Shown: positions 10,156 through 46,790 of the stretch, in pieces
Position numbering within the stretch: position 1 is the stretch's first letter
Layout: each line of letters opens with the position of its first letter
Sequence record: PP355768.1
Length of the DNA: 64,000 nt
Direction: 5' to 3' (one strand)
Notes under the pieces: model-generated
What the model saw: the letters and a program-made list of their open reading frames with translations, nothing else
Told to the model about the DNA's origin: nothing
Database searches by the model: none
Translations under genes and position numbers: made by a program

Positions 10156-10766
10156 AGACTTTCTCTCAAAACTAGGTTAACCCCATCGTATACACCATCA
10201 ACTGTGATTTCTTCGCTGAATGAATCTCCGTTCATTAACTTAGTTTGGAAGAGAATCCCATTGAAACGTGGTCTCTCGGAGCCGTTGGTAGTGAGCAACA
10301 GATCAGGGTATAGATTAAGCGTCCATACTCCTGCTACGTTTTTAAAAGATGTAATCTTGTACACCTTTGGATGTGTGGTTAACTGGAACAAATCACCCGG
10401 TTTTGGTTCCCCTACTAGAGAGCCTGTATTGGTGATAACCAGTGTGGAGCCTTTTTGTCCGGCGGCAATGCGACAGTTGTTCGCATCTCCCCTTACTCGG
10501 TAAGACTCATAATGTGGAAGCATAACGTCGAGGTAGCCTCTGGTACGTTTATACTCTAAAATTGCTGACGAAAGTACAGCATACTCATCGGGAAACATCA
10601 CAGGATAACTAATGTTAAGACCCCAATACTGAGTGGCTGTTTTAACTTCGTTAACCTTGCCGTTTGGTAGCTCGTCTCTGATCACTGGATCGTTATCGAT
10701 CAGTGTAGCTTTATCAAACCCAAGGCCGTTATACTGAGGATGTGTAAAGGGATCTGGTAATCTCAT
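10152..10766 (-). CDS. pb9: Distal tail protein (Dit) pb9
   Basis: 204 aa, MRLPDPFT..YNGLGF as in T5 pb9; synteny. Confidence 0.92.
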   Translation of the reverse strand: MRLPDPFTHPQYNGLGFDKATLIDNDPVIRDELPNGKVNEVKTATQYWGLNISYPVMFPDEYAVLSSAILEYKRTRGYLDVMLPHYESYRVRGDANNCRIAAGQKGSTLVITNTGSLVGEPKPGDLFQLTTHPKVYKITSFKNVAGVWTLNLYPDLLLTTNGSERPRFNGILFQTKLMNGDSFSEEITVDGVYDGVNLVLRESL

Positions 10767-26317: not shown

Positions 26318-28294
26318 TTAGGCAAGCCTTTGCACAGCAATCCTAACCTCAGGAAGAATTACTCGCATATTCATGATATTGCTCATCTCAACGTTAACCC
26401 AAACTTCAACACTACCGTCAGCCCTAGCTATCAGCCAATAGATAATGGCATAATCGCCTTGAGTAGCAGAGTTAGTAGTAGCAGGTGCCCACATAGCCTT
26501 CATTTGCATGGCGTTGTTCCCAGGAATAACTCCACACTGGGTTACGGTTCCGCGTATAAAGTGGAACGGCACACACATGTTAACTGGAAGACACATGATT
26601 TGATGCACACGTTTCTGGAAGTGATTTCCGAAAATTCTCAGCCTACTATCTACCTCGCTCCACTGGGTAAGATCTTCTAGAGGGTTATAACATCCAATCC
26701 CTGCAGCAGCAATCCACTCATCGTTTTTCCAGTCTAGAGTGACGACGCAAGCCCCATTTCGGGAGTTATTAACCCCTAACCACAAGGTAGCCAGGTGGTG
26801 ACTAGCATTACCGCTAGTACGTAAGTTCCCTCCAATATCAGCAGAGCCGGTACCGCCCACTAGGCGGAGAGGTCGAGTTGCTTCGGACCATACTGGACCC
26901 CACTGGTTTCCGATTTCTGGTGGGTTAGATTTTACATACCACTGCGCATCAGATCTAAAATTGTAAACTCCTACAGTGGTTACATGCATCTCACTTATGT
27001 TACCTTGCCCAAATTCCGCACCATTATCTGGTCGAGTTAGAGGCTGATTGAAGTGAACATATCCATTATTACCAACAGTAGGGTTGCCACTAAATCTAGC
27101 AACATTGGTCGCAATAACTCGGATATCAGGCCTATTACCTGGGCTGTAGTTTATATTGTTCTGGTTTATGAACTTCCACCCAGTGTTCATTAGGTTTATA
27201 CCGTTTACAATGAACTCTCTAGGGCTGATTTTAATCTCCTGGTTGCGGGAGCCAAATACGTTCTCTGCGTAGAACCCCTGCCCATTGTATTTCATGTTAG
27301 TAATATACCAGCGAACACGTTTAGGAACCCGGAAGTTATTGTCACGGTAAATGGCATTGTTACCCCAACCACTACCAGCATTGTTGTTATCTGTGTTCTC
27401 CCACCCCATAAAGTTATTGGGCGGACCACGGAAGAAACCTGCCTTATACTCAATTTCCTGGTATGACTCGGTCTGGATATTATGAGCATATGGCCCGCCT
27501 ACCGGGTTAGAGCTTTTACCATATCTAGGGCCCATGTGTCCATACATGTTACGATTGAGAGTTTCCCCACGTAAGCATATACTGTTAACACCAGTATTAC
27601 GCATCCATGGGTGGCGCATAGCATCAACACCAATAGTAAGTGGTCTATTAGGCGGAGACACAGAACCGGCTATATTGCCACTAAAAGCCCCCCTATAGAG
27701 TACCCAACCGGCTTTAATAATTGTTTGAAAGTTAGGAGGTATAGGAGCTCCAACCGGCGGCCCAGGCCCCCTGTCCCCCCATTCTGAGTTAACGCCCCAG
27801 GTGTACATACACCCAGTACCATCTCGTAGCTTCTCATTAATAGTACCTGGCGTCTCTTCGAAATAGAAACTAATATCCATGTGTAAGTCTGCAGAAGCAC
27901 AAACGTTAGTCTTCATACTAGCCATAGTACCTGCAGAAACCTGGGAACCGACAGTATTACTAAAGTAAGCGTTATACGCCTTGGCGCCCACACCCAGGGA
28001 TGTACCGTAAATGAAACGTCTAGTACCATCCTCAAACTCAACCTCAGTTAAGACAACCCTGTCGTAGTCTGCGGACAGTACCTGAATAATCCTATCGGGC
28101 ATACGCGAACAGCGATACCAATCACCACCGTCCCAGAGTGTAACCTCATGGGTCTCTAAGATGACGACGTGTGGCATGTCGCTATGGAATATGGTATCCC
28201 AACCATTATTTAAGTGGTTGTTAATATCCTTGTTATTGCCCGAGGTTAGGGAGAGAACCTTCTTCCCTCCTATGCGACCTGCAAAAAAGCCCAT
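26318..28294 (-). CDS. pb5: Receptor-binding protein, pb5 (oad) family
   Basis: [20 protein letters not shown]-terminus matches the pb5 family; 658 aa; next to terS. Confidence 0.88.
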
Positions 28295-28313
28295 AAAAAC
28301 CTCAAAATCTCAC

Positions 28314-28374
28314 TTGCTAACAAGTGACTTTTATAATATAATATTATTATAAATTAAATCAACCGCCAAGTAAA
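28314..28374. promoter_or_regulatory. Overlapping divergent promoters
   Basis: Plus: TTGCTA-17-TATAAT (28314-28342). Minus: TTTACT-17-TATAAT (28374-28346), towards pb5. Confidence 0.75.
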
Positions 28375-28407
28375 CCAGATTTTTTAAAACCATCTAGGAG
28401 GACCACT

Positions 28408-28632
28408 ATGGAAGTAGTTATAGGAGCACTTATCTTGCTCTCAATCGTACTATTTGTCATTACCGTAAAGCAAGGTAAGACAATCAAACAGCTAGAACGC
28501 ACTAACGGAGTGTTGCAGAAGTCTTATGACAACCAAACCCGTTTGCTGCATAAGGCACAGTTAAACCTGTCTGAATGCAAAGCGGAACTAGAATCAGCAA
28601 ACAAAATCTACATTACTAAGGGTATGGCTTAG
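28408..28632 (+). CDS. Small membrane-anchored coiled-coil protein
   Basis: AGGAGG RBS; hydrophobic N-terminal 19 aa then a heptad-like segment; no lipobox. Confidence 0.75.
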   Translation: MEVVIGALILLSIVLFVITVKQGKTIKQLERTNGVLQKSYDNQTRLLHKAQLNLSECKAELESANKIYITKGMA

Positions 28633-28691
28633 AGGGTCGGGATGTTCTTTCTAATTGGGGGGTGGTATGGTAGTCCGATTACCCCCCTAGC

Positions 28692-28735
28692 TAACTATTA
28701 GTACCCTAACTATTTCGCTAGGGTACTATTAGCTT
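28692..28735. terminator. Hairpin between the convergent 28408 ORF and dmp
   Basis: AGTACCCTA-9-TAGGGTACT stem. Confidence 0.6.
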
Positions 28736-28737
28736 TC

Positions 28738-29454
28738 TTATGATGCGATGGCTAACGATTGAATGAATTGTTGTGGCTTAATTCCGTAGTCGCTTCTTTC
28801 TTCTTCGGTCATACCTTCCCAGCAATGAGCTAAACGCTCGCAAAGATATTGATAATCATTATCATCATCCAGCGCTTCATCTATGAATGACTCACCCGCA
28901 AGGCGCACACCAATAGATAGAATATCGTTGATTGCGGTAGCGTCCATCGTTTGAAGGCCAGCAGCAGCAGCAGCAGCCAACACGCCTTTATTATCGTCAA
29001 TCATAGTGATAGTAGAGTTCGGATATTCAGCTTTAAGCATTTCGAAATAATGCGTTTTATAGATACCATCTTTTGCATAGTACACCTCTTTGTAATCAGC
29101 ATCGCCAATATATCGGTGCAATACATCGCGGGATAGTATCTGGATATTACCACCGCGCCCCGCCCTGATACGTTGTTTCCGTAGGAAATAGTAATCGCTT
29201 TTGCTCATATAACGAGCGGTAACAACGATGTTTAATACAGTGGGATCATTAAGCGATGCCCGCATATATTCAACCAGCGGTAAAAGAGTGTCGGTCATAA
29301 TTGCATCATGAACGCAAGCCTTTTCCCGGTACATGTTTAAATCTAAGTTACCTTTCTCATCCATACACGGGAACACACGGGCGAAGGAATTAATAACAGT
29401 CCCGTCTAAATCCCATAACTTAATTGCCTTAATTGCCAGTTTATTAAAAGCCAT
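28738..29454 (-). CDS. dmp: Deoxynucleoside-5'-monophosphatase (HAD family)
   Basis: WDLDGT motif I and MIDDN motif; first gene of the T5 terminal repeat. Confidence 0.9.
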   Translation of the reverse strand: MAFNKLAIKAIKLWDLDGTVINSFARVFPCMDEKGNLDLNMYREKACVHDAIMTDTLLPLVEYMRASLNDPTVLNIVVTARYMSKSDYYFLRKQRIRAGRGGNIQILSRDVLHRYIGDADYKEVYYAKDGIYKTHYFEMLKAEYPNSTITMIDDNKGVLAAAAAAGLQTMDATAINDILSIGVRLAGESFIDEALDDDNDYQYLCERLAHCWEGMTEEERSDYGIKPQQFIQSLAIAS

Positions 29455-29527
29455 TTTTCATTTCTCCGGTTTCGGGGTTGTTGGTAATTAATCAAGCGAG
29501 CTATATTATAACTCGCTTTGTTAATTA

Positions 29528-29989
29528 TCAGAAGAATAAAGTTAAAGCATCAGCCAATTCAGCCGGTTTAATCCGGGTAGCCATTACCGGGACAATTGCC
29601 AGCGGCGGCGTATATTCGCTAGAAGAATATTCCCCGTAGTTCATCACGTCGCCAAGTAAATAGGTATCATCATAATCGTTTTCACTTACGACGATAAACA
29701 TAAGGCCAGCGGCTACGGCGTCAATCTCCACGGTTTCACAAATATCAGCCTCATAGAGAATCGAATCAGCGGCTACCAATTGGGAGATAATGCCCGACTC
29801 TTTAAAATCAGCGGGGCGCGGGAGAATATCGGTCACGGCTTTTAATACAGTGGCGCCGTCAACGGTAATGATTTTTTGATAGCTAACATGCGGGCGCCCT
29901 TCGCTATCGCGGGAAACAACAAGGCTGTTTTCTACGACGTTGGACGCGGTGAAAGATTTACGATTGTTATAGATGAAAGTAAGTTTCAT
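29528..29989 (-). CDS. Pre-early hypothetical protein
   Basis: 153 aa; GGAG RBS; between A1 and dmp as in T5. Confidence 0.75.
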   Translation of the reverse strand: MKLTFIYNNRKSFTASNVVENSLVVSRDSEGRPHVSYQKIITVDGATVLKAVTDILPRPADFKESGIISQLVAADSILYEADICETVEIDAVAAGLMFIVVSENDYDDTYLLGDVMNYGEYSSSEYTPPLAIVPVMATRIKPAELADALTLFF

Positions 29990-30017
29990 TTGTTTCTCCA
30001 GCTTATTTATTTAGGGG

Positions 30018-30305
30018 TTATTTTGATTCAATACTAGCAACGAAAATTAAATCTGTCTCATTCCATAAATCGGGAATATCATCTTCCCGCAAATATTCTA
30101 GCGCATCGCTAGAGTTCTGGAATGAAACAAAACTATCATGGGATCGGACTATATGAAATACTCCGCTCCACTCGCTTTGCATTAAATATATGTTGGGATC
30201 GCCAGCGTTTCGATATACAGTCTCGTACATAACGCGCTGCAATGTTACGCTATCGGAATCGTTAACCATCTTCGGGAGTCTGGTTTTAACAGCCATTTTA
30301 ATCAC
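30018..30305 (-). CDS. Pre-early hypothetical protein
   Basis: 95 aa; operon position after A1. Confidence 0.7.
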   Translation of the reverse strand: MIKMAVKTRLPKMVNDSDSVTLQRVMYETVYRNAGDPNIYLMQSEWSGVFHIVRSHDSFVSFQNSSDALEYLREDDIPDLWNETDLIFVASIESK

Positions 30306-30340
30306 CTTTAATTAGCCGGGGCAAATACCCCGGCTTTTTA

Positions 30341-32023
30341 TTATGCAAAGAAAACGCCGTCTTTAAAGTCAATCAAGGTACGTTGACCGTTTTCATAGGT
30401 GATCAAATGCGTTTGTGACCAGCTAGACGCGCCAATGTTATAGCCCATATCCAGCGAGCCAGCGACGCCAGCAGTATAAACGCCGCCGTAAATGCTGGGC
30501 GTGTGCGTGTGGCCAGTGTTCATCTTACCCAGCTTACGGAATCCTTTCGGGTTGCCACGAGCGCCGTTAATGCCGTTGTGACCGTGGGAACCGCATTCGA
30601 TGCCCGCGATTTTCATCGATTCGTCTGTAGTTAAGAAGATCGCAGCAAAATCGCAGCCAGCAACATTGCGCAGGGCGTAATCCAGCACGTTAAAAGTATC
30701 GTCTTTGTTTTCGATTGCCTCATAAATCGCAGCATTCAGGCGATAATAAAGATGAGCATTCGCCGGGTCTTGCTGAATGTTAGCCTTGCTATCATCCAGC
30801 CAGCGAGAAAGCGCAAGATCGTGGTTCGATTCAACGATCACCGTTTGGCTAAATTCACGTTCCATTTGCTCCAGCACGCGCCCCGTATCGATCAGGTCGT
30901 CAATTACCTTGTCACGTCCGGCGGCATATTGTTTCGCAAGGAAAACACCACTAGCGCGGTTGTGATGGTTGCGCGACGTGAAATCATGCACATCATGCAC
31001 AATCTGGTAACGAGGGCGCAGGATATCTACTAGCGCGGTTCCGCTAGGGTTATATTCCCAGCTTGCCGCCGCGACAGCGTGATCCAGCTTTTCGGCGTGA
31101 ATGTCACCATATTGCAGCGCGGCAACGTGGCCCGTTACTTCTTCGCCACCGTTAACAGTAAATTTATGATTAAGATCGTAAAACATCCCGCTTTCGTCCA
31201 TCGTTTCAAGCTGGCGAGCAAAGAAGTTGCCGTTGTCGTCGATCTCTACCAGCAAAGCGCCGTAATTATGCAGCGCTTCGGCTTTTTGGCCCGCTTTTTG
31301 CTGAATATAATTTTTCAGCGTCGCCGTGCCCGTTGAATACATACGGCGCACCGTGTCGCCCTTCATTGCCGGGACACTTTCGGCGGTGATTTTAGCGTGA
31401 CCAATAGCCAGCCCTTTCAGGCCGTAGGCGGTCGCAGTCTCGCCAAAGCCGGACAGCGGAAAATCAGCAGTCGGCAGAATGTTAATTTCTGCCATGAATG
31501 CAAAGCCTGTTTCACGGTTGCCCAAAAACACGTTTTCATCACAAATGAAATCTGAGAAAGCATCATCATATTTCAGATCATCATTGCCCTGCCCATTCTG
31601 GAAGCCCTTTTTATTGTAAGCATATTTGCTTACTAATAGAGTAGCACCGAGATATTTCGCGGCCTCCTGTAAGGTTTTCCAGAAATTAGCATGAGGGAAG
31701 GTATTATTCTGAATCGACGTTAACAGAAAACGCTTACCCGGAATTACCTTCCAGCTTTCGACGCTAGAATTAAGCTGACCAGCGGCAACGGGGCGGGAAT
31801 CTTCCACCGCAACACGTTGGGCGCGTTTTTCAGCAGCAGGTTTAACAGGCTTGTTATTATCCAGCCAATCGCAAATTTCGCTAGAGTGTTTCGCCGTGCC
31901 GTAATGCTCTTTGCTCAATTCGTCGCAGATCTCCAGCTTTTTAGCGCGCAGACGTTTACCCCAAAAATTGAGGTTATTTGCGGCGGTTAAAATAGCTTTT
32001 TGTTTCTCAATTGCAATGATCAT
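30341..32023 (-). CDS. A1: A1 protein (host DNA degradation and second-step transfer; metallophosphoesterase-fold nuclease)
   Basis: 560 aa; YGDIH, HD..D, SNHD, HGH and GHTH motifs; T5 A1-like N-terminus. Confidence 0.93.
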   Translation of the reverse strand: MIIAIEKQKAILTAANNLNFWGKRLRAKKLEICDELSKEHYGTAKHSSEICDWLDNNKPVKPAAEKRAQRVAVEDSRPVAAGQLNSSVESWKVIPGKRFLLTSIQNNTFPHANFWKTLQEAAKYLGATLLVSKYAYNKKGFQNGQGNDDLKYDDAFSDFICDENVFLGNRETGFAFMAEINILPTADFPLSGFGETATAYGLKGLAIGHAKITAESVPAMKGDTVRRMYSTGTATLKNYIQQKAGQKAEALHNYGALLVEIDDNGNFFARQLETMDESGMFYDLNHKFTVNGGEEVTGHVAALQYGDIHAEKLDHAVAAASWEYNPSGTALVDILRPRYQIVHDVHDFTSRNHHNRASGVFLAKQYAAGRDKVIDDLIDTGRVLEQMEREFSQTVIVESNHDLALSRWLDDSKANIQQDPANAHLYYRLNAAIYEAIENKDDTFNVLDYALRNVAGCDFAAIFLTTDESMKIAGIECGSHGHNGINGARGNPKGFRKLGKMNTGHTHTPSIYGGVYTAGVAGSLDMGYNIGASSWSQTHLITYENGQRTLIDFKDGVFFA

Positions 32024-32106
32024 TATCTAAATTCTCCAGTTAATGGGATATAGGCAAAATTGCCAAATATAACGCCGTGTTGCTAGTGGCGTTATAATTT
32101 GCGACT

Positions 32107-32334
32107 TTAAACTATTGCGGGAATAATGCTGGCGGATATTCCAAAGGCTACGGCTAGAATAATAAAGATTATTGACCAGCGGCGGCAAATATTCGCTTTC
32201 TTAAACCAGAAGTCACGGCGGAATAAATCCATTTGTTCACTGCCTATTTCCATGAAATTATAATAACCATAGAGACAAGCGGCGGCGAAAAAGCCAGCGA
32301 TAAGAATTAAGGATTCAGTAGGGAAAAAGATCAT
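32107..32334 (-). CDS. Small two-TM membrane protein
   Basis: 75 aa with two hydrophobic segments; between A2 and A1. Confidence 0.75.
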   Translation of the reverse strand: MIFFPTESLILIAGFFAAACLYGYYNFMEIGSEQMDLFRRDFWFKKANICRRWSIIFIILAVAFGISASIIPAIV

Positions 32335-32600
32335 TTTACAACCTCCTTTTCTTCTACGCTGAAAGCGTAATTAAGAAGGTAAATTTCGCGGGAAGATAAT
32401 TCCAACATTTCCGGCTTAAATACTTCGCGGTTAATAGCCATACCGTAAGTATCCGCATCAGGGTTAACCCACAAAACAATATATTCAGGTACTTTAACGC
32501 TTGGGGGCGTCATAACCTTATTATCCTGATAACCCGTCTGGATTAATTCATCCACAACGGTTCCCGTTAATTTAATAACGGAGCCTCTAATTAAAGCCAT
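32331..32600 (-). CDS. Pre-early hypothetical protein
   Basis: 89 aa; GGAG RBS; ATGA coupling to the next ORF. Confidence 0.7.
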   Translation of the reverse strand: MALIRGSVIKLTGTVVDELIQTGYQDNKVMTPPSVKVPEYIVLWVNPDADTYGMAINREVFKPEMLELSSREIYLLNYAFSVEEKEVVK

Positions 32601-32666
32601 TTTATTTCTCCAGTTATGGGGGACAAAATATTTAATTATGCGCCCCGCTAGGGAGGCGCATTATAA

Positions 32667-33071
32667 TTATTCTGCCGACTCTTTTACTTCATCCTGAACG
32701 CCAACCATACGGGCGATAACGTCCAGTTGATCCAGCTTCATTTGTTCCAAACTTGCCAGGCCGTCGGCATCTTCGATCAGGCCGTCAGCAATGGCGTGCT
32801 GAGTGAGAACGCGCACATAGTGAGCCTTACGCAGGGAGGAACCGCCGCCGACTTTGCGCGGCTTATCGGACTTCTGATACACCTTTGCGCTAACCAGTTT
32901 AGAGCGCACTTTAACATGCGATTCAGCACCGACAGCCTTTGCAATATCGATAAGACCTTGCGAGTTAGCCACCTCCAGACCTTCGGCGGCAATAATGCCT
33001 TCATACATAGAAATCGCAGTTGCGGCGTTTGTTTCGTTCCATGCAAATTTTTCGGTTTTAGTAGCAGTCAT
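32667..33071 (-). CDS. A2: A2 protein (second-step DNA transfer, DNA-binding)
   Basis: 134 aa; VRSKLVSAKVYQKS..RKVGGGSS.RKAHYVR as in T5 A2. Confidence 0.92.
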   Translation of the reverse strand: MTATKTEKFAWNETNAATAISMYEGIIAAEGLEVANSQGLIDIAKAVGAESHVKVRSKLVSAKVYQKSDKPRKVGGGSSLRKAHYVRVLTQHAIADGLIEDADGLASLEQMKLDQLDVIARMVGVQDEVKESAE

Positions 33072-33365
33072 GATATATCTCCAGTTTTATTTAAGGGTTA
33101 AGGCTAGAATGTTATTCCTAATAAGCTGTTAATAATAGCGGTTAACCTCATCACCGTAATATTCCGGCACTATCGTTAAAAGTATTATACAGCTTATTCA
33201 GAAAACACTTTAAAGCTATTTCTTTCAAAATATATTAGCGCATTATTCGTCGCTTTATTTTGCCGCTCTTAATTGCCGCGGTAGCATGATATGTACCGTC
33301 GAAAGGATATATTATAAATATACCGAATCGCCGGGTGAGGCGGTTTAATTAATACCATTTAGCCG

Positions 33366-33626
33366 TTAAGCGACGGCTAACCATTTATCATCTTTGCGAA
33401 TAACCTTTACAACGTCGCCGGAATCGACCCGGACGCTATAAAGTTTTAAATCACTGTTTTTTGCTTTTTCCGTTTCGGCGTATACCGCGTTGATTTTATC
33501 AAACGGGATCATAGCCGCCCCTTTGATATATCCGATTTTTTCATTTTCGCCCGGCTTACTTACGTCGCCAGTAACAAAAGGAATAAAAACGGAATCACCG
33601 ATCATTGGGGTTTTAACGTTCTGCAT
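33366..33626 (-). CDS. Pre-early hypothetical protein
   Basis: 86 aa; GGAG RBS. Confidence 0.72.
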   Translation of the reverse strand: MQNVKTPMIGDSVFIPFVTGDVSKPGENEKIGYIKGAAMIPFDKINAVYAETEKAKNSDLKLYSVRVDSGDVVKVIRKDDKWLAVA

Positions 33627-33732
33627 GTTTCTTACTCCAGTTTAGTTTATTGGGTTATCCGGTTAACACTCTTTTACTGCTAGAGTGTTAACAGAAAACT
33701 CAATTACCCTTACTGAGAGAATCGACTTTTCC

Positions 33733-33797
33733 AAATTTTTAAAGAGCGGTGTTGCTTATTGAGATTCTATAATAAAGCGTTATCGGCAGATTGTCAA
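33733..33797 (-). promoter_or_regulatory. Pre-early promoter followed by a boxA-like site
   Basis: TTGACA (33797-33792)-17-TATTAT (33774-33769); CGCTCTTTAAAAATTT at 33748-33733. Confidence 0.75.
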
Positions 33798-33982
33798 ACG
33801 TTATTTTGTAAAGATTTTAGATAACGCATCATGTTATCCCAAATCATCGGCAAGCCTTGCTGACCTCCGCGCTGATAAGAGCGGTAACGCCGTTTTATAT
33901 CGCGCTGCATTTTGACCAATTCCGAGCCTGCCATTTTGTTCAATTTTGCTGCCGGTTTAGATGATATTACAAATCGTTTCAT
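33794..33982 (-). CDS. Small basic pre-early protein
   Basis: 62 aa Lys/Arg-rich; AAAGG RBS. Confidence 0.65.
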   Translation of the reverse strand: MKRFVISSKPAAKLNKMAGSELVKMQRDIKRRYRSYQRGGQQGLPMIWDNMMRYLKSLQNNV

Positions 33983-33997
33983 GTTGTCAACCTTTAA

Positions 33998-34123
33998 TTA
34001 GTGGAGTGTATGATTTCGTTTCTTTTCCATAAAGATGTTCCCATCTTTATGTTGGAAATAAACTTCTGTATCATACACCTCTAAATACTGCTTTATGAAT
34101 TCTTCAACTTCTTCAACGGTCAT
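33998..34123 (-). CDS. Small acidic ORF (41 aa); its natural start at 34158 appears frameshifted
   Basis: MTVEEVEEFIKQYLEVY...; the upstream ATG AAT T|AAA ATC AAT CGA would extend it in another frame. Confidence 0.4.
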   Translation of the reverse strand: MTVEEVEEFIKQYLEVYDTEVYFQHKDGNIFMEKKRNHTLH

Positions 34124-34212
34124 AGCAGCCGCTACATTTCGATTGATTTTAATTCATGTTTTCGGTTCCCTTATAAAGTAAAGAAAGCCGATAACGCTTT
34201 TTATAGAATCCC

Positions 34213-34228
34213 AAATTGTTAAAGAGCA
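34213..34228 (-). promoter_or_regulatory. rrn-type boxA antitermination element
   Basis: TGCTCTTTAACAATTT, identical to the E. coli rrn leader boxA. Confidence 0.75.
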
Positions 34229-34230
34229 GT

Positions 34231-34359
34231 GTAGGGCGGGGGCAGACTATACTTGTTTCGGCCTTTCCGTTCGGGGTAGTCGGGGCTATGTTACCGCCTC
34301 CTGATACCTGACTACTAGTGAAACGCTTTCGTGTTTCCCGTTTCGTCTTGCCGCCCTAC
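34231..34359 (-). ncRNA. Candidate structured 5' leader RNA (129 nt)
   Basis: GTAGGGCGG/CCGCCCTAC closing stem, internal GTAGTC/GACTAC stem and GAAA-capped hairpin; starts at the predicted TSS. Confidence 0.6.
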
Positions 34360-34366
34360 GAGATAA

Positions 34367-34394
34367 ATAATAACACAATGACGTTTAGCCGCAA
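34367..34394 (-). promoter_or_regulatory. Pre-early promoter driving the leader and A2-A1-dmp direction
   Basis: TTGCGG-16-TATTAT with an extended TG. Confidence 0.6.
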
Positions 34395-34590
34395 GCGGAG
34401 AATTGTAAAGAAGCGTAAAGAGAAAACAGGCCCACGATAGATAGGAAGCGCGCGCACGTGACACAATATTTAAAGAAAGTCAACGAATATTTTTACTATT
34501 TTTCTTCAAAAGGGGTTGACAAAAGCTATTTCACACGAGGTGAGGAGATCGCCTCATACCCGGTATGATTCATCGGCTTTTATCTAAAAC

Positions 34591-34911
34591 CGCTTAGAAT
34601 CGATTCTAGAGCGTTTTAGACCCTGTTAATAACTTATACAAAAAGCAAAAATGAAATTTAATTAGTTATCCACTAGACAAATGATTATTTTTATGAAAAC
34701 GCAAAATAATGCTTGCGTTTATTTTATGCTGTACTCCTGTTTTCCGGGCAAGTTATCCACAGCACAAAATAACTTGACAAGCTGAGAAGCGGTATAACGA
34801 GATATCCCCAGACTTATCCACAGGTTATCCTACTGTATATTTATACAGTATATTCCAGCAGCGGTAATACTCTAATATACCCCTAGAACGCTCTATAACG
34901 CATTCTGAGCG
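34591..34911. repeat. Non-coding block: inverted 29-bp motif pair flanking DnaA-box-like sites and a LexA box
   Basis: CGCTTAGAATCGATTCTAGAGCGTTTTAG (34591-34619) and an inverted copy (34883-34911); TTATCCACA at 34753-34761 and 34814-34822. Confidence 0.75.
34831..34850. promoter_or_regulatory. LexA (SOS) box
   Basis: TACTGTATATTTATACAGTA, 1 mismatch to the consensus TACTGTATATATATACAGTA. Confidence 0.75.
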
Positions 34912-34959
34912 CTTTAAATTTAGAAGCCATATTAAAGGCCATTGCTAGAGGGGCGCAGA

Positions 34960-34995
34960 AAAACAAAAAGCCCGCTCATTATAAGCAGGCTTATT
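34960..34995 (-). terminator. Terminator after the leftward pre-early operon
   Basis: Minus strand AAGCCTGCT..AGCGGGCTT followed by TTTGTTTTT. Confidence 0.65.
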
Positions 34996-35011
34996 ATTAG
35001 TTAGCTAACTA

Positions 35012-35359
35012 TTAGCGGAATACCGTTTCAATTGTTTCGCCGCTAGAGCATACCGACCCGCCGCGATAAAACAGGCGTTCGGTTTTATATTTGGTTAGCA
35101 GATCATAGAGATCCAGATCATCGGAAAGCGGGTAAGATTCCCCCAGCGCGGAAACGGAAACAGGTTTACCCGCCACCAGATCACGGCAAATCAGAATCAG
35201 CAAAGGCCAACTAATATTGATAGCATCGCCCCGCAATCCAATTTTGAGGGTAGCCACTTCGTCAATATGACGCGCATTCTGGCGGCTAACGTATTGAATC
35301 ACAGATTCCATCGTTTTATAGTGAGCCAGAAAATATTTGTTGACATAGATATAAATCAT
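35012..35359 (-). CDS. Pre-early hypothetical protein
   Basis: 115 aa; ATGA coupling. Confidence 0.72.
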   Translation of the reverse strand: MIYIYVNKYFLAHYKTMESVIQYVSRQNARHIDEVATLKIGLRGDAINISWPLLILICRDLVAGKPVSVSALGESYPLSDDLDLYDLLTKYKTERLFYRGGSVCSSGETIETVFR

Positions 35360-35880
35360 AGGTATACGACCCCGCTAACCTTCCAACCGGATTTTAAACC
35401 TTCCTCAATATGAAGAATAGTTTCAGCATCCGGGATATAGATAAACGTTTTCAATTCGCGCAGATTAATGACCGCCTTTCCGTCAACTATCTGGATATAG
35501 CCCAAATAGATTGCCCGCTCTAGAACGGAATGAAGGGGCGAACCACCATTAACGAGGTTGCAGGAATGACCGGGCCAGTACATATAAAACGACCCTTCTA
35601 CCCCAGCATTACAGTATTTTTCGTCGTCGTCTTCTTCCCAATCATCCTCGCCTAACATACTTTCAGCATGTTCGCAAGCCTTTTCCCAGGAAAGGGAATC
35701 GACGTCAATTCCACGACCTAAAAAATGAAGGTCAGTCCAGCCAGTACCGCAAAGGTTAGTATCACATTTGAGGACAGCGGCGACTTCCTGAGACTCAATT
35801 CGCCCGCCCTCTAAATATAAACCTTCTTCCGCTTCTACCGTACAATTAATGCCCGGTACGCAAGATTTCATATGAAACAT
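35356..35880 (-). CDS. Pre-early hypothetical protein, acidic
   Basis: ATG 35880 after GGAG; GEDDWEEDDDE patch. Confidence 0.72.
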   Translation of the reverse strand: MFHMKSCVPGINCTVEAEEGLYLEGGRIESQEVAAVLKCDTNLCGTGWTDLHFLGRGIDVDSLSWEKACEHAESMLGEDDWEEDDDEKYCNAGVEGSFYMYWPGHSCNLVNGGSPLHSVLERAIYLGYIQIVDGKAVINLRELKTFIYIPDAETILHIEEGLKSGWKVSGVVYL

Positions 35881-35933
35881 GGTTTTCTCCAATAATGGGG
35901 GCGGCTAGAGATTCAGCCGCCGGGAAGGGGATT

Positions 35934-36431
35934 TTACAGCTTATCGCGGAAAGTATCAAGCCGGTTGTTTAGCTCTTTAATCGCGTCGGCATGGATTTCG
36001 TCATACGTTGACACGATATCCGCCAGCTCATCCATAGTTAGCGCGCTAACATTAATATCAGTTTTCACGGTTAGCTTTTCCGGTTCCGGGGCGGCTGGTG
36101 GTTCCGTGGAGAAGCTGAGAGATTCCGGGCGAACTAGGAAAATCTCTAGTTCGGTTGCACCGTTTTCACAGTCAACCTCATACGTATTTTCCCCAATGTA
36201 AACATCAAAACCGTAACCGTAAACTCCACCAACACGCAACGCCATTCCGGTGATTTCGTCGTGATCGGGGTAACAATCGCGGCGGTCAATTTGTTGCGCC
36301 AAAGCCTTAACGTTATCTTTTGCAACAATAATTGCAAAGCGTTCGCACCGCTCGTCTGCGTTGCGCAAATAGCGGAAAGCCTCGGCAAGCGTCATCTTTT
36401 TACCTTCAAAAGTAGCGGTTAACCGTTCCAT
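35934..36431 (-). CDS. Pre-early hypothetical protein
   Basis: 165 aa; GGAG RBS. Confidence 0.72.
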   Translation of the reverse strand: MERLTATFEGKKMTLAEAFRYLRNADERCERFAIIVAKDNVKALAQQIDRRDCYPDHDEITGMALRVGGVYGYGFDVYIGENTYEVDCENGATELEIFLVRPESLSFSTEPPAAPEPEKLTVKTDINVSALTMDELADIVSTYDEIHADAIKELNNRLDTFRDKL

Positions 36432-36496
36432 TTTTGTCTCCAGTTAGTTAGCAGGGTAATTATTATAGCGCCCCATTATAGAGGCGCTGGATATAA

Positions 36497-37459
36497 TTAC
36501 TCTGATTCGTTTTCAATCAGGCTAGAAAGATTGACGCCTTTCAATACTTCGTCAATCATTTCGCCTACATTGAAACTTTGTACCAGTTCCAACATGGCGG
36601 CTTGCATTGCAGCGTCAGCCGCAATCACCGCTTTGCGGTTGTTCGGCGCATACTGGCTAACCGCAAAATTCAGCAGGTTAGCAATTACCACACGACCTAC
36701 CGCCGTGTCAACATAACCGCGAACCATAAACGGCGCTTTGCTGGCGGCGATGCCGGAAACTTTTTTCAGGACGATGGAACCAGCTTCCAGTTTGGCAGCG
36801 TTTACGGCAGCGTTTTTGTTAGCGGCAACGATAGCGGTAGCGGTAGATTTGATAGTATTCATTTGTAATGCTCCAGTCTCAAAATTATTAGGGTTAACTA
36901 CATTTTCAGTAACAGCCGGGGCGACTTCTTCTAGCTCGCCATCATAACGATAATTTCCAGTCCTTGCCCCTTCTTCGATTTCGATATCGTAGAAGTTACA
37001 TGGTAACAGGATACTACCGTCCTTGTCAAGCACAAAAATCATCATTTCGCTAGAGATTCGTGCTGGTGGTAGTTCCAGATGATCACAAAGATTTTTAATC
37101 CATGCGCGGGCATCGGTGAAAGCAAGCAGTTCGCTTTCATGGTAGCAAAAACGTCTCGACGCTTGCTTACCCTCGGACGCCTTATACAAATAAGCGTCCG
37201 TAGTAGTAGACACTATCAGATCAATAGGCTGGCTGTCAACCAAATATTGATCATCGTGATAAATAACAATCGCCGCGCCGGGGTTGGCTAGAGCGTAGTC
37301 ACGGCAATGCTCAAAGGCATAGCCGGATCTACTTTCCATATTTGCGCGATAAACGGCCAAAATATGACCAATAGAGGCGCACTTACTGCCGTCTAACAGG
37401 TTGCGAGCGCCACCGCGAACCATAGGCAAATTAGCAACGGGGGTAAACTTCTGTAACAT
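36497..37459 (-). CDS. Pre-early hypothetical protein with an Ala-rich amphipathic C-terminal half
   Basis: 320 aa; first gene after a promoter; AAAGGAG RBS. Confidence 0.78.
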   Translation of the reverse strand: MLQKFTPVANLPMVRGGARNLLDGSKCASIGHILAVYRANMESRSGYAFEHCRDYALANPGAAIVIYHDDQYLVDSQPIDLIVSTTTDAYLYKASEGKQASRRFCYHESELLAFTDARAWIKNLCDHLELPPARISSEMMIFVLDKDGSILLPCNFYDIEIEEGARTGNYRYDGELEEVAPAVTENVVNPNNFETGALQMNTIKSTATAIVAANKNAAVNAAKLEAGSIVLKKVSGIAASKAPFMVRGYVDTAVGRVVIANLLNFAVSQYAPNNRKAVIAADAAMQAAMLELVQSFNVGEMIDEVLKGVNLSSLIENESE

Positions 37460-37491
37460 TTTCTGTTACTCCTTTGTTTGGCTGAGAATCT

Positions 37492-37634
37492 ATTATAGCA
37501 AGATTCCCAGCTTTTTAGCAAGCACTATTTTCTCTAGGCTTGTTCCCGTTCAGGAGATCGCATTATGGCGGAATCGGATTTGATTGTCTACTACTAAAAA
37601 TAGTAGTTGCTTCCCGCTAGAGTTATGTTATTAT
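37492..37634. promoter_or_regulatory. Divergent pre-early promoters
   Basis: Minus: TTGCTA-18-TATAAT (37521-37492). Plus: TTGCTT-16-TG.TATTAT (37607-37634). Confidence 0.65.
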
Positions 37635-37662
37635 TATGACTCCAAACAAAGGAGATCGAAAA

Positions 37663-37776
37663 ATGGCTTTTTCAATGTTGGCGCTCGGTTTAGTCGGTTC
37701 TATGATGGTTTTGGGCTTTATCGCTTTTTGCGGCTATGCCCTCTATGATACCTTGTTTAATAAGGAGGCTTTTTAA
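37663..37776 (+). CDS. 37-aa single-pass membrane peptide
   Basis: AAAGGAG RBS; MAFSMLALGLVGSMMVLGFIAFCGYALYDTLFNKEAF. Confidence 0.6.
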   Translation: MAFSMLALGLVGSMMVLGFIAFCGYALYDTLFNKEAF

Positions 37777-37876
37777 TGAGAACTTTACGCGGTGGTAGTT
37801 CCTAGAGACTAAATGGATTGCTATTTCTGCAATTATTAGCTTGCTAATCTTATGGGTAGCGGAGGTATTTTTATGA
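37776..37876 (+). pseudogene. Broken paralogue of the next gene
   Basis: MRTLRGGSS resembles MSRSLRGGSP; the hydrophobic tail KWIAISAIISLLILWVAEVFL is in another frame. Confidence 0.45.
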
Positions 37877-38052
37877 GTAGATCATTACGGGGCGGTAGCC
37901 CAAAAAGCCGGGGACACGGGATTTACCACGTCCGGCAGTCTAACGATCGTTTTCGCCAGGAAATACGCTCCAGCGAAAAAGTTAAGGGCGTGCAATGGCC
38001 TTGGGTTGTTATCCTGATAATCGTTCTCATTATCATTGGGTCGGCTTTATGA
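37873..38052 (+). CDS. Small basic protein with a C-terminal TM anchor
   Basis: GGAGG RBS before ATG 37873; WPWVVILIIVLIIIGSAL tail. Confidence 0.65.
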   Translation: MSRSLRGGSPKSRGHGIYHVRQSNDRFRQEIRSSEKVKGVQWPWVVILIIVLIIIGSAL

Positions 38053-38192
38053 TGCTTACAATCCTATTTATTAGCCTGCTATGTATTCTGCCCGGCCTGG
38101 TGGCGCTAGAGGTCTGGTCACGATCACCGGTTGACGCGGAGCGCGAATTAGAGCGCGAAAAAGCAAAGCGTGACGGCTGCCCGTTGCTATAG
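38049..38192 (+). CDS. 47-aa membrane protein
   Basis: ATGA-coupled; MMLTILFISLLCILPGLVALEVW then a charged tail. Confidence 0.6.
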   Translation: MMLTILFISLLCILPGLVALEVWSRSPVDAERELEREKAKRDGCPLL

Positions 38193-38200
38193 GTCGGCTT

Positions 38201-38299
38201 TATGATACTTTTGATAATAGTTAGCATAGTAATTATTACACTGGCAATAGTTTCGGTCGTAAACTATTTTTGGCCTGAATGTTTTCACGGCGATATGTA
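38201..38299 (+). CDS. 32-aa membrane peptide
   Basis: MILLIIVSIVIITLAIVSVVNYFWPECFHGDM; shares the GGTCGGCTTTATGAT start context with the previous ORF. Confidence 0.55.
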
Positions 38300-38362
38300 A
38301 GAGTGTCGCCGCCCTCCTCCACCGCGTGACCCCTTACTAAAATACCCCCACGAAAATTAAAT

Positions 38363-38470
38363 CGCTTAGAACGCTTCCTAGAGCGCTTAAAATCGATATC
38401 AGCAGAAAGTGTTGCTGGGAAATACTGTATAAATATACAGTAGGATAACCTGTTGATAAGTCTGTTGATA
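38363..38470. repeat. Inverted copy of the 34803-34911 module (29-bp motif, LexA box, DnaA-like boxes)
   Basis: Reverse complement of 38413-38470 aligns to 34803-34860 with an identical ~30-bp core. Confidence 0.8.
38423..38442. promoter_or_regulatory. LexA (SOS) box
   Basis: TACTGTATAAATATACAGTA, exact reverse complement of the box at 34831. Confidence 0.75.
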
Positions 38471-38565
38471 ACTCGCTACCGATCGATTGAGGCGTCAAGC
38501 TAATTTACAATTTTGTATAACTCTGGGGATAACTTAAATGATAGTGTTTCTCACTTCCTTTTTGA

Positions 38566-38660
38566 AATGCGAATCATTCTCATTCGCATTCAGCTCGGTA
38601 AACGCAAATCATTCTCATTCGCATTCAACTTCTCAAATGCGAATCGTTCTCATTCGTATT
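38566..38660. repeat. Three 25-bp palindromic repeats at 35-bp period, Fur-box-like
   Basis: AATGCGAATCATTCTCATTCGCATT and variants at 38566, 38601, 38636. Confidence 0.85.
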
Positions 38661-38692
38661 TGCATTTCCGACCCCCCGGCCCTTCCTGCGCT

Positions 38693-38904
38693 TATGTGCG
38701 AATCCGACAATTTGTCAAGCAAAATATTACGTGAGGCTGCTAGGGTATGTGCAAATCCGATGAAAATTTATTTTTACCGCCCTGGGGGTTGGCGTGAGTT
38801 GGTGGAAGTATGTGCAAATCCGACACAGCTAGTAAATATAGCAGCGCGCAGTTTGCTGCGGCGCAGCGGTGGGCGCGAGTTTGGGGAAGTATGTGCAAAT
38901 CCGA
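38693..38904 (+). repeat. Four direct 15-bp repeats in the putative injection-stop region
   Basis: TATGTGC(A/G)AATCCGA at 38693, 38746, 38809, 38890. Confidence 0.9.
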
Positions 38905-39080
38905 CGGGTATTTTTTAGGGGAGGGATAAACGGGGTTAATTGGGGCAATTCGGGGATGATGGGGGCAGGGGGCAGATAAGGGAAAATATTATGAGTTAAA
39001 TGAGGGTAAAGGGGTTGACACAGAAAAAATTCCTGTGGCTCATCTATCTATTTAATCTAACTTTTTTATCTTATAGAGTT

Positions 39081-39109
39081 ATTCTAACATACATCTCAAA
39101 TAATGTCAA
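39081..39109 (-). promoter_or_regulatory. Strong promoter pointing into the repeat region
   Basis: A-tract UP element then TTGACA-17-TAGAAT. Confidence 0.75.
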
Positions 39110-39130
39110 GAATTTTTACGAGAGTGTTTG

Positions 39131-39163
39131 AAAAAGTGTCACGGGGTAGATGTTTACCCCGTG
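39131..39163 (-). terminator. Terminator ending the leftward early operon
   Basis: CACGGGGTA-6-TACCCCGTG plus T5 on the minus strand. Confidence 0.75.
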
Positions 39164-39173
39164 AACTCGTAGA

Positions 39174-39515
39174 CTACAGTTGAGAACGTAGGTTCTCTAA
39201 CTCAGTGAGGAAGGCAGGATTCGTTTGATCGAAATCCTTAATGAGGAGGTGCTGATCAAAGGAGAATTCGTAGTCTTCTCCGTACAGCTTAATGAAGAGA
39301 TCTGGATGTTCACGCTTCAACACAACATGCGCTACGATACTCGGGGTGATACCACCATCTCCTTTGTGGTAATCGAATAACTGTAGAGTTTCATGCCTAG
39401 CTTCTGGTTTAGCTGGTTCTTCTTTCTCGATACCCCAAGGAGTAACAAACTTAGGATCACCACCTGGGAAGACAGATGCTCGCATCTTATAAACATAAGA
39501 ACTGAGATCTTTCAT
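39174..39515 (-). CDS. Early hypothetical protein
   Basis: 113 aa; last gene of the leftward operon. Confidence 0.7.
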   Translation of the reverse strand: MKDLSSYVYKMRASVFPGGDPKFVTPWGIEKEEPAKPEARHETLQLFDYHKGDGGITPSIVAHVVLKREHPDLFIKLYGEDYEFSFDQHLLIKDFDQTNPAFLTELENLRSQL

Positions 39516-39584
39516 CGCTTTACTTCCTTGCCAAACTGCAAAGATCTCATGTTTACCTTCAGACGCTCTGACTGGTATTTAACT

Positions 39585-39899
39585 TTATTCACTCCACCTA
39601 GAATGTGAAAACGGCTCTCTACCTGTCAAGCGTTCAATCATCCTCCGGTGCTCCCGCTCTCTGTGTTCCTTAAACACCTGAAGAGCGGCGAAACTGTCCA
39701 CTGGCGTGTACGGCACGCCGTTAACTTTGAGGATATCCTCGCCTCTGATCTTGAATAGCGGGTTGTCCTGCTGGGCCTTAGCGTGGCATTCGCTCAAGTA
39801 TTCTGAGAAAGTTGTGCCATCTTCCCGAGTACACAGGGTGCGGAGAAGATAGCTACAGTTCTCACCAACCGGAGTCCATACTTCATATTTCTCATTCAT
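39585..39899 (-). CDS. Early hypothetical protein
   Basis: 104 aa; AGAGG RBS. Confidence 0.72.
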   Translation of the reverse strand: MNEKYEVWTPVGENCSYLLRTLCTREDGTTFSEYLSECHAKAQQDNPLFKIRGEDILKVNGVPYTPVDSFAALQVFKEHREREHRRMIERLTGREPFSHSRWSE

Positions 39900-39911
39900 T
39901 GTATTATCCTC

Positions 39912-40421
39912 TTACATAAAGAAATCTTCATCGGATTCAGCTATTTCTTTATAAAAGCCGTGGTATGCGGCAACTGCCTCGCTAGGTGCTGCCATGTCGT
40001 ATAGGCGTGCTCTTTGTTTTAATTCTGCTTTATTTTGGCACTGCCTAATCATTTCTTCTACTTCTTGCTGCAAGCGTGCATCTACACGAACCACCAGCTC
40101 ACCGTCATGAATAGCTCCAACTTTGTACGTCAACATCGTGAGATAGCCCGGGTGCTGTCGAGATTTTTTGAGAACCACGTTAGTATACGCTGTTAACTCA
40201 TGGACGAATACTGCACCTGGGAATGCGTAAGGAGTTAGCTTCTTACGAGCTTTTACTGCCCTAATATCTATTAAATGAAAGAAGTCTTTCGGAGTCTTGG
40301 ATATGTCGTCCGGTACTTCTACTTGGAACTGATTCCAGAGGATACGTACTTTGTTCTCCGACATGCCATAGACAATGTACGTTTCGTTAGCTTCTTCAAA
40401 ATCAACTGTACAGAATAACAT
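39912..40421 (-). CDS. Early hypothetical protein
   Basis: 169 aa; operon packing. Confidence 0.72.
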   Translation of the reverse strand: MLFCTVDFEEANETYIVYGMSENKVRILWNQFQVEVPDDISKTPKDFFHLIDIRAVKARKKLTPYAFPGAVFVHELTAYTNVVLKKSRQHPGYLTMLTYKVGAIHDGELVVRVDARLQQEVEEMIRQCQNKAELKQRARLYDMAAPSEAVAAYHGFYKEIAESDEDFFM

Positions 40422-46759: not shown

Positions 46760-46790
46760 CAAAGACACTGACCATGGTATTGATTTTGAT
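46760..46790. other. Junction between T5-like and T4-like genomes
   Basis: The T5-type promoter keeps its -10 (TATAAT 46758-46753) but has no -35; a T4-type gene fragment starts immediately on the other strand. Confidence 0.85.

Follow-up and report, generated by a model that had tools for sequence, protein, structure and literature searches.

The region described here lies at positions 33733–39109 of a 64,000-nucleotide (nt) stretch of sequence record PP355768.1; this stretch is referred to below as the window. The source is Klebsiella phage vB_Kpn_AM_K6, a T5-like Sugarlandvirus, which the region matches at 100%, and the region is ~92% identical to Sugarlandvirus phages such as IME260. The annotated terminal repeat of IME260 (1–10277) includes the genes dmp, A1 and A2, and the match to the present region falls inside it, after these genes. 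Since homology with IME260 and T5 sets the ends of the corresponding repeat at 28665 and 39041, the region consists of the right half of the DNA that a T5-like phage transfers first, and of 68 nt of unique DNA. It is the known T5-type injection-stop region (T5 Repeat Regions 1–3) and not a previously unseen element, and all of its elements map to named features in the T5 GenBank annotation AY587007. Two points appear to be new: throughout the family, palindrome D of this region has the sequence of a consensus LexA operator and is joined to DnaA boxes, and the pre-early transcripts carry boxA in their leaders. An initial annotation of the window had described the same DNA as a candidate landing pad for host regulators. 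The inverted pair of modules and the sequences around and between them comprise the following features.

34666–34761, plus strand: DnaA boxes TTATCCACT (34666–34674) and TTATCCACA (34753–34761), the remnant of T5 IRC.
34795–34860, plus strand: left composite module (T5 IRD), consisting of a DnaA-like pair, GG, TTATCC and then the LexA operator TACTGTATATTTATACAGTA.
34802–34822, plus strand: DnaA-like pair ATATCCCCA-GAC-TTATCCACA of the left module.
34831–34850: left LexA operator TACTGTATATTTATACAGTA, 19/20 to the 20-nt consensus.
35012–38192: cargo, with four minus-strand open reading frames (ORFs; 115, 178 and 165 amino acids, and a DUF7566 protein of 320 amino acids) and three small plus-strand ORFs.
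38413–38478, minus strand: right composite module (T5 IRD' with palindrome D), consisting of the LexA operator TACTGTATAAATATACAGTA and a DnaA-variant pair.
38423–38442: right LexA operator TACTGTATAAATATACAGTA, 19/20 to the 20-nt consensus.
38451–38471, minus strand: DnaA-variant pair TTATCAACA-GAC-TTATCAACA of the right module.
38512–38532, minus strand: second DnaA-variant pair TTATCCCCA-GAG-TTATACAAA (T5 IRC'), an inverted repeat.

The two LexA operators are the sole occurrences of CTGT-N8-ACAG in the window, and two such sites in 2212 nt of non-coding DNA compare with 0.01 expected from 500 dinucleotide shuffles, which bears out the two LexA boxes of the initial annotation. CTGT-N8-ACAG is the LexA motif of the gamma-proteobacteria, including Vibrio (PMC3323433), and is thereby the motif that the host LexA uses. 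The operators occupy both arms of a 66-nt inverted repeat (34795–34860 / 38413–38478; 89% complementary) and, being copies of one element, are not independent of each other. The right operator is identical to T5 9330–9349, the “palindrome D” situated within inverted repeat D' of T5, and the T5 counterpart of the left operator is the copy in inverted repeat D (6135–6154).

The same non-coding DNA holds six DnaA 9-mers within one mismatch of TTATCCACA, where 0.46 are expected and none of the 500 shuffles reaches six; the DnaA-box-like 9-mers reported initially are therefore real by this measure. Two of the boxes are perfect, and three pairs (34802–34822, 38451–38471 and 38512–38532) have a spacing of 3 nt. 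They stand in the fixed arrangement IRC-spacer-IRD / IRD'-spacer-IRC', an inverted pair around the variable cargo, and their T5 counterparts are IRC, IRD, IRD' and IRC'. Clustered, high-affinity TTATCCACA boxes with fixed spacing and orientation are likewise found in oriC, datA and DARS, although datA acts by titration, which a single phage copy cannot achieve. An AT-rich unwinding element was not noticed, though no search aimed at one was made. An origin role for the phage boxes is argued against in 10.1101/866236, given that T5 replication starts at other places and that the genes for replication have yet to enter the cell.

Conservation was followed in the A1 neighbourhoods of eight annotated phages and 80 IMG/VR loci, and the Demerecviridae-type set comprises 36 loci with a full-length A1 (34–100% identity). 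In 36/36 of these loci CTGT-N8-ACAG is present in the 10 kb upstream of A1; the 356 kb covered there contain 60 sites, where 5.4 are expected, and the 163 kb downstream of A1 contain none. Pooling the distinct phage sites yields the LexA consensus, TACTGTATA(T/A)(A/T)TATACAGTA. The module DnaA-3nt-DnaA-GG-TTATCC-TA-CTGTAT-N4-ATACAG is found again in phages of Serratia, Proteus and Vibrio, where the identity of A1 is as low as 33–58%, and in an alignment of 11 modules the CTGT and ACAG half-sites of LexA and the cores of the DnaA boxes are invariant while the flanks diverge. When the comparison is anchored on the DnaA pair, the LexA core is kept in 14/17 distinct downstream sequences; of the three others, two keep CTG-N10-CAG in the form CTGG...ACAG or CTGT...CCAG, variants that occur in natural SOS boxes. 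In Proteus phage Stubb the left DnaA module is missing, yet LexA boxes flank the cargo on either side. The LexA operator is conserved no less widely than the DnaA boxes. The initial annotation had named a lack of conservation among relatives as one ground for refuting its proposal, and the LexA, DnaA and boxA motifs are in fact kept from Escherichia to Vibrio phages against diverging flanks.

Contigs of other phage groups with an A1 homologue contain five CTGT-N8-ACAG cores in 403 kb, which is the chance level, and the LexA/DnaA/boxA architecture is absent from the unrelated, probably non-gamma-proteobacterial contigs with an A1 homologue (L058–L088). A search of 185,579 bacterial and archaeal genomes for the composite DnaA-LexA module returned one match, a 2-kb contig of a metagenome-assembled genome (MAG; L089, CALJZR010000013.1), which is probably phage DNA binned into the MAG; with this single match, the module is specific to phages, and a host origin of it was rejected. 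We also note that A1-like metallophosphoesterase genes are present in many unrelated phage contigs (L058–L088, IMG/VR), with GC contents of 0.34–0.67 and with A1 aligned from about residue 75.

The SOS operators of gamma-proteobacteria, temperate phages and colicin plasmids resemble the phage sites in having CTGT-N8-ACAG with the full TACTGTATAT-ATATACAGTA consensus. They overlap the promoter of the regulated gene, whereas the phage sites overlap no convincing promoter and form an inverted pair kilobases apart in a virulent phage. Near the LexA operators only a weak TTATCA/TTATCC-16-TATATT is present, and no strong promoter was found within the composite modules in any lineage compared. This bears on the possibility that each module is a promoter-operator, in which DnaA box 2 and the LexA box would double as the -35 and -10 of a weak inward promoter, DnaA and LexA would repress this promoter, and transcription of the cargo or of its antisense strand would sense the replication and SOS state of the host. 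The right-arm TTATCA-16-TATATT scores 9/12 in the promoter scan, and in most lineages the conserved GG-TTATCC-TA linker keeps DnaA box and LexA half-site 16 nt apart. The left-arm version, however, falls below the scan threshold, the -10 likeness of TATAT is inherent in any consensus LexA box, the mapped T5 cargo promoter lies upstream of gene 011 at ~200 nt from the left module, and, of two promoters that face inward, one would in every case read antisense. A promoter-operator function is thus distinctly improbable in our judgement. As a separate observation, a motif CTA(A/G)AACGCTCTA, with the related forms TTAGAATCG and CTAGGACGTTCTAGG, flanks the modules at 34607–34619 (minus strand) and 34883–34895 (plus strand). 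Motifs of this type also adjoin the LexA boxes in Proteus and Vibrio phages (L005 ~7790, L008 ~575), and we know of no protein that binds them.

The cargo between the modules is variable, and its proteins were matched only to the families DUF7566, DUF7177 and DUF7416. Compared with T5, Kamaji and Stubb it runs the other way round: the gene for the DUF7566 homologue points in the direction of A1 in the Klebsiella phage and against A1 in those three, which suggests that the cargo flipped across the inverted repeats during evolution. The modules could accordingly be read as the ends of an old invertible or mobile cassette, whose host-factor sites would serve recombination or transposition instead of injection; the end of Tn5, for example, carries a DnaA box. 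The inverted repeats do bracket the most variable part of the terminal repeat, the distance between the modules varies widely, and the inversion of the cargo in Sugarlandvirus fits such an origin. On the other hand, no recombinase or transposase was detected among the proteins of 35012–38192, the modules are far better conserved than the cargo and hold a fixed place beside the stop point, and Stubb retains both LexA boxes despite its missing left DnaA module. We find the cassette explanation barely credible.

The leaders on the A1 side of the region contain the following features.

33736–33748, minus strand: boxA-1 CGCTCTTTAAAAA, ~15–25 nt into the transcript, a perfect match to GYTCTTTAANA.
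33797→33769, minus strand: pre-early promoter TTGACA-17-TATTAT, 11/12 in the promoter scan.
33759–33787 / 34187–34214: inverted repeat (the equivalent of T5 IRA/IRA') that includes the -10 and spacer of the 33769–33797 promoter.
34216–34228, minus strand: boxA-2 TGCTCTTTAACAA, identical to the rrn boxA 13-mer and preceded by a GC-rich leader (34233–34359).
34394→34367, minus strand: putative extended -10 promoter TTGCGG-16-TGtTATTAT for boxA-2, proposed from sequence only.

The gamma-proteobacterial boxA consensus is GYTCTTTAANA (10.1101/091223). boxA-1 and boxA-2 are its only matches in the window; both are perfect and lie on the A1 (minus) strand, and two sites compare with 0.02 in the shuffles, so that the two boxA elements of the initial annotation turn out stronger than had been stated. 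In every lineage boxA (CGCTCTTTAACAA or CGCTCTTTAAAAA) is situated on the transcribed strand in the 5' leader, 8–30 nt past the -10 of a TTGACA-type promoter, and it is found in both divergent pre-early operons where such operons exist. The layout of promoter and then boxA, as in boxA-1, is seen in seven other lineages, including Kamaji, Stubb, id46 and Vibrio phages. In 36/36 Demerecviridae-type loci boxA is found on the sense strand upstream of A1, as are the LexA cores; over these loci, 57 sense and five antisense boxA matches lie upstream of A1 and none downstream. The statement of the initial annotation that most of the sites are not positioned over phage promoters accordingly holds for the LexA and DnaA sites and fails for boxA.

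The start of the boxA-2 leader, TATCTCGTAGGGCGG, is kept in T5. Folding of 34205–34358 on both strands gave structures no better than those of shuffled sequences (z = -0.03 and -0.48), and an Rfam scan of 28000–40000 at E ≤ 1 returned no RNA family, only sub-threshold Thr/Trp-leader matches over the terminator 34961–35046. The rrn leaders and the lambda nut sites likewise carry a perfect GYTCTTTAANA on the transcribed strand, tens of nt past strong promoters; unlike in those systems, an N-like protein and boxB were not identified here, and the boxA-2 leader is devoid of a significant folding signal. Because NusB/NusE recognise boxA as RNA (PMC3177189, PMC2800207), boxA is a cis-acting signal of the transcript and not a landing site on DNA.

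To the right of the right module, and partly within the cargo and the module itself, lie the features that the initial annotation had assigned to Fur, IHF and an orphan promoter, along with the repeats and the nick site known from T5.

38016–38034: Fur-like site, 16/19, within the cargo region.
38446–38458, minus strand: IHF-like string TATCAACAGGTTA, overlapping the first box of the DnaA pair of the right module.
38566–38590, 38601–38625 and 38636–38660: three 25-nt palindromes AATGCGAATCATTCTCATTCGCATT with a period of 35 nt (T5 DRC / palE-palI).
38685–38691, plus strand: CCTGCGC, homologue of the T5 7.9% major nick site (T5 misc_feature 9661–9668).
38693–38906, plus strand: four direct repeats TATGTGC(A/G)AATCCGA(C/T) (T5 DRD).
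38907–39012: G-rich tract, to the right of the DRD repeats.
39014–39041, plus strand: repeat-end motif TTGACA-N19-CTGTGGCTC, the right boundary of the terminal repeat.
39109→39081, minus strand: “orphan” promoter TTGACA-17-TAGAAT (TG-extended), directly downstream of the early-operon terminator 39139–39164 (minus strand).

The order of palindrome array, nick motif, DRD repeats (TGTGCAAATCCGAC) and repeat-end motif to the right of the module is that of T5, in which TATGTGCAAATCCGAC is direct repeat D. In most relatives similarity stops at 39041, right after CTGTGGCTC, and the long terminal repeat (LTR) of T5 likewise stops after CTGTGGATC and carries the same repeat-end motif, TTGACA-N19-CTGTGG(C/A)TC, at 10114–10139. 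The TTGACA of this motif resembles a -35 hexamer; the motif is more likely part of an end-processing or packaging signal. We also note that CCTGCGC is followed by TTATGTGCGAATCCGAC, the same context as that of the 7.9% major single-strand nick of T5, and lies directly past the third palindrome.

The calculated shear point of T5, 9618, falls within the homologous palindrome array, and from this homology the injection stop of the Klebsiella phage is predicted near 38640–38690. With the stop at that position both composite modules and the boxA leaders would be inside the cell during the pause and the palindromes at the boundary, while the DRD repeats, the G-rich tract, the repeat end and the orphan promoter, which lie at or beyond the predicted stop, would be outside. 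The orphan promoter does exist as initially annotated. It is nevertheless located 40–68 nt past the repeat end (39041), in sequence unlike IME260, and is therefore not part of the first-injected DNA; its candidacy as first-step DNA was rejected on this position. The IHF consensus of the initial annotation is similarly present as a string but does not hold up as a meaningful site: at least one match to WATCAANNNNTTR is found in 79/500 shuffles, the string is missing from the other arm and from T5, and it consists of a DnaA-box variant and the GGTTA that follows. An IHF site was rejected on these grounds.

The three palindromes have the hexamer layout of a Fur box and match the Fur 19-mer at only 13/19 positions. 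Fur-like matches number eight against 0.76 in the shuffles, an excess that consists mostly of overlapping matches inside the repeats. The three best Fur-like matches of the window all lie in the terminal repeat, and two of them overlap, which leaves two loci. Thus, of the three to four Fur-box-like palindromes claimed initially, three exist as palindromes and a fourth site reaches 16/19, but the three agree poorly with Fur. Fur boxes (GATAATGATAATCATTATC, or 7-1-7 TGATAAT-N-ATTATCA) share with them the forward-forward-x-reverse order of hexamers and the AAT/ATT cores, and the copies in T5 itself reach 15–16/19, compared with 13/19 in the Klebsiella phage. Unlike in Fur boxes, a T of the hexamer is replaced (GCGAAT/GAGAAT) and no promoter is overlapped; the departure from Fur is at the same hexamer positions in all copies, and the family-wide core is TGAGAAT-N-ATTCTCA instead of TGATAAT-N-ATTATCA. 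Apart from these palindromes, a perfect Fur 7-1-7 box, TGATAATGATTATCA, is found inside dmp (28845–28869; 18/19 to the 19-mer) and is the sole perfect one in the repeat. At a distance of ~190 nt from the repeat's left end, it encodes DDNDYQ; its codons are kept in T5-like phages while nearby synonymous sites vary, and the box is absent in Kamaji, Stubb and Vibrio phages.

The common deviation of the palindromes from Fur would make sense if the palindromes and repeats were operators for phage proteins (A2, A1-A2, a virion nickase, terminase or a tail-plugging internal virion protein) and their likeness to host sites were inherited coincidence or mimicry. A2 is needed for the second step of injection and is annotated as a DNA-binding protein in PHROG, and the DRD repeats straddle the repeat end in the manner of terminase recognition arrays. 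For the modules, however, this explanation meets the difficulty that all 20 nt of the LexA consensus, flanks and tolerated variants included, reappear in the pooled LexA-like sites and that perfect TTATCCACA boxes stand beside them; nothing would lead a phage protein to preserve two host consensuses. The injection stop requires no phage protein synthesis, and A1 and A2 are therefore disfavoured for the stop itself, while a virion protein is not. The AlphaFold model of A2 (pLDDT 78.8) is all-helical and has no LexA-like fold. Profile search of PDB sequences found no relative of A2 and Foldseek found none better than E = 2, and A2 was rejected as a LexA-like protein. With no significant match in sequence or structure, A2 as a ligand of the repeats is neither supported nor excluded. 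As an account of the whole region, phage-protein operators are unlikely in our estimation, though they deserve serious attention.

The initial annotation had gone further and proposed, as one possibility, that the first-injected DNA is an integrated decoy, which would titrate LexA, Fur, DnaA, IHF and Nus and thereby reprogramme the SOS response, iron regulation, replication and antitermination of the host. The LexA, DnaA and boxA motifs on which it draws are real, enriched and conserved, and the window's three best Fur-like matches, at two loci, are all in the terminal repeat. The stoichiometry is unfavourable. LexA, DnaA and Fur are present at on the order of a thousand or more molecules each per cell, whereas one genome brings two LexA operators, ~8–10 DnaA boxes and 3–4 weak Fur-like sites, which makes titration at normal multiplicity implausible. 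Moreover, boxA exerts its effect in cis through the RNA, the IHF string is no commoner than chance allows, the Fur palindromes reach 13/19 only, and the DRD repeats and orphan promoter would be outside the cell in the pause. T5-like phages destroy the host DNA within minutes, so that little would be gained by derepressing host regulons. The decoy is unsupported by these results, and we consider it highly improbable; the variants of the initial annotation in which the DNA acts as a physical brake or a sensor are possible.

A brake has in fact been proposed for this region. The repeat architecture of the T5 LTR goes back to Heusterspreute 1987 and Wang 2005, as cited in 10.1101/866236. Davison (10.1101/866236) compared the Repeat Regions in 25 T5-like phages, placed IME260 and Sugarland in a “Type 3” without part of IRC, described eight conserved DnaA boxes paired 3 nt apart and a widely varying distance between the modules, and put forward membrane-bound DnaA, possibly assisted by IHF and FIS, as the agent that halts injection; an old report cited there describes two first-step DNA bands near both module positions. 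This DnaA-membrane model is itself called untested in a later paper (PMC10644984). The present region has the same site after dmp-A1-A2 as in T5, with the inverted pair and its DnaA pairs, palindrome D, DRC, DRD, the nick and the repeat end. It differs from T5 in the partial IRC and in the cargo on the opposite strand, and structurally shows nothing beyond Davison's “Type 3”. In that paper LexA, SOS, Fur and boxA receive no mention, and palindrome D is treated as a mere palindrome or possible cleavage site (10.1101/866236). A literature search that did not extend to most subscription journals found no paper tying a LexA/SOS box or boxA to T5-like repeats. The initial annotation knew of no description of an integrated system; the architecture, the DnaA boxes and the DnaA brake are all published for Sugarlandvirus, while the link to LexA and boxA was not encountered.

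The reading that we hold to be probable, with appreciable room for doubt, distributes the elements over three layers: boxA leaders, DnaA-LexA modules that act in cis, and distal repeats for phage proteins. In the first layer, boxA at the start of the pre-early transcripts would recruit host NusB/NusE at the RNA level and render transcription resistant to termination. In the second, two inverted composite operators, each with two or three DnaA boxes and one LexA operator, bracket a swappable and evolutionarily invertible cargo. DnaA and LexA, which are present before infection, would bind the modules in cis during DNA entry, and the resulting nucleoprotein complex, possibly tethered to the membrane via DnaA, would hold or organise the first-step DNA beside the stop point and not titrate anything. 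As in Davison's model, pre-existing host DNA-binding proteins would thus act at both inverted-repeat modules on the entering DNA. In the third layer, the palindrome array, nick site, DRD repeats, G-rich tract and repeat end would serve A2/A1, the nickase and terminase rather than Fur. The identity with T5 features, the strength of the motifs, and their family-wide conservation and arrangement are observed; that LexA, DnaA and NusB/E bind is deduced solely from how strong the motifs are, and a part played in the pause is equally presumptive. A stop that is free of protein synthesis would fit the second layer, as would the position of the two first-step bands close to the modules.

Several points weigh against the three-layer reading. 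The LexA operators stand apart from classical SOS operators in overlapping no convincing promoter. Proteins bound on the cytoplasmic side account for holding the DNA more easily than for stopping it, and any of these repeats could in truth be bound by A2. To our knowledge there is no report that T5 requires recA or lexA functions. The conservation represents ~7–8 lineages and not sixty events, because the copies share one ancestral element. Finally, all known Demerecviridae hosts share CTGT-N8-ACAG (PMC3323433), which leaves no variation in host LexA specificity with which the palindrome could covary.

A more specific extension of the three-layer reading makes LexA and DnaA a working part of the two-step injection. 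Both would load on the modules as these enter and, with no need for new protein synthesis, help to hold the DNA or block read-through; A1-dependent breakdown of host DNA would then activate RecA, the ensuing self-cleavage of LexA would release the block, and Nus and boxA would act in parallel. This sequence of events is rather improbable as a whole. If true, it would couple the destruction of host DNA to the second step of entry. The T5-type stop at 8% has been unexplained for ~sixty years, and the sole current sequence-based model is that of DnaA (PMC10644984); LexA would be a second candidate host factor for the stop, and one that is easy to manipulate genetically through lexA(Def), lexA(Ind-) and recA hosts. 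The boxA leaders suggest participation of the host Nus machinery in pre-early transcription, which, if true, would be a new host dependence of this phage family. Should neither LexA nor boxA hold, the “landing pad” is still the known injection-stop region and not a new system.

The remainder of the terminal repeat, to the left of the region, and its setting in the record are given below.

28665–39041 (~10.4 kb): terminal repeat, a single collapsed copy that constitutes the first-step-transfer DNA, on the basis of IME260 homology.
28738–29454, minus strand: dmp.
30341–32023, minus strand: A1.
32667–33071, minus strand: A2.

Homology with the left end of IME260 begins at GTATGGTAGTC (28665), and the repeat starts with dmp, A1 and A2, the region under study being its right part. 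We also note that PP355768.1 (261 kb, labelled Straboviridae) is a chimeric assembly, with a junction at window position 46789/46790 (~108790 in the record). The sequence to the left of the junction is Sugarlandvirus and that to the right matches T4-like Klebsiella phages at 98–99%; across it the GC content falls and the strand bias switches.

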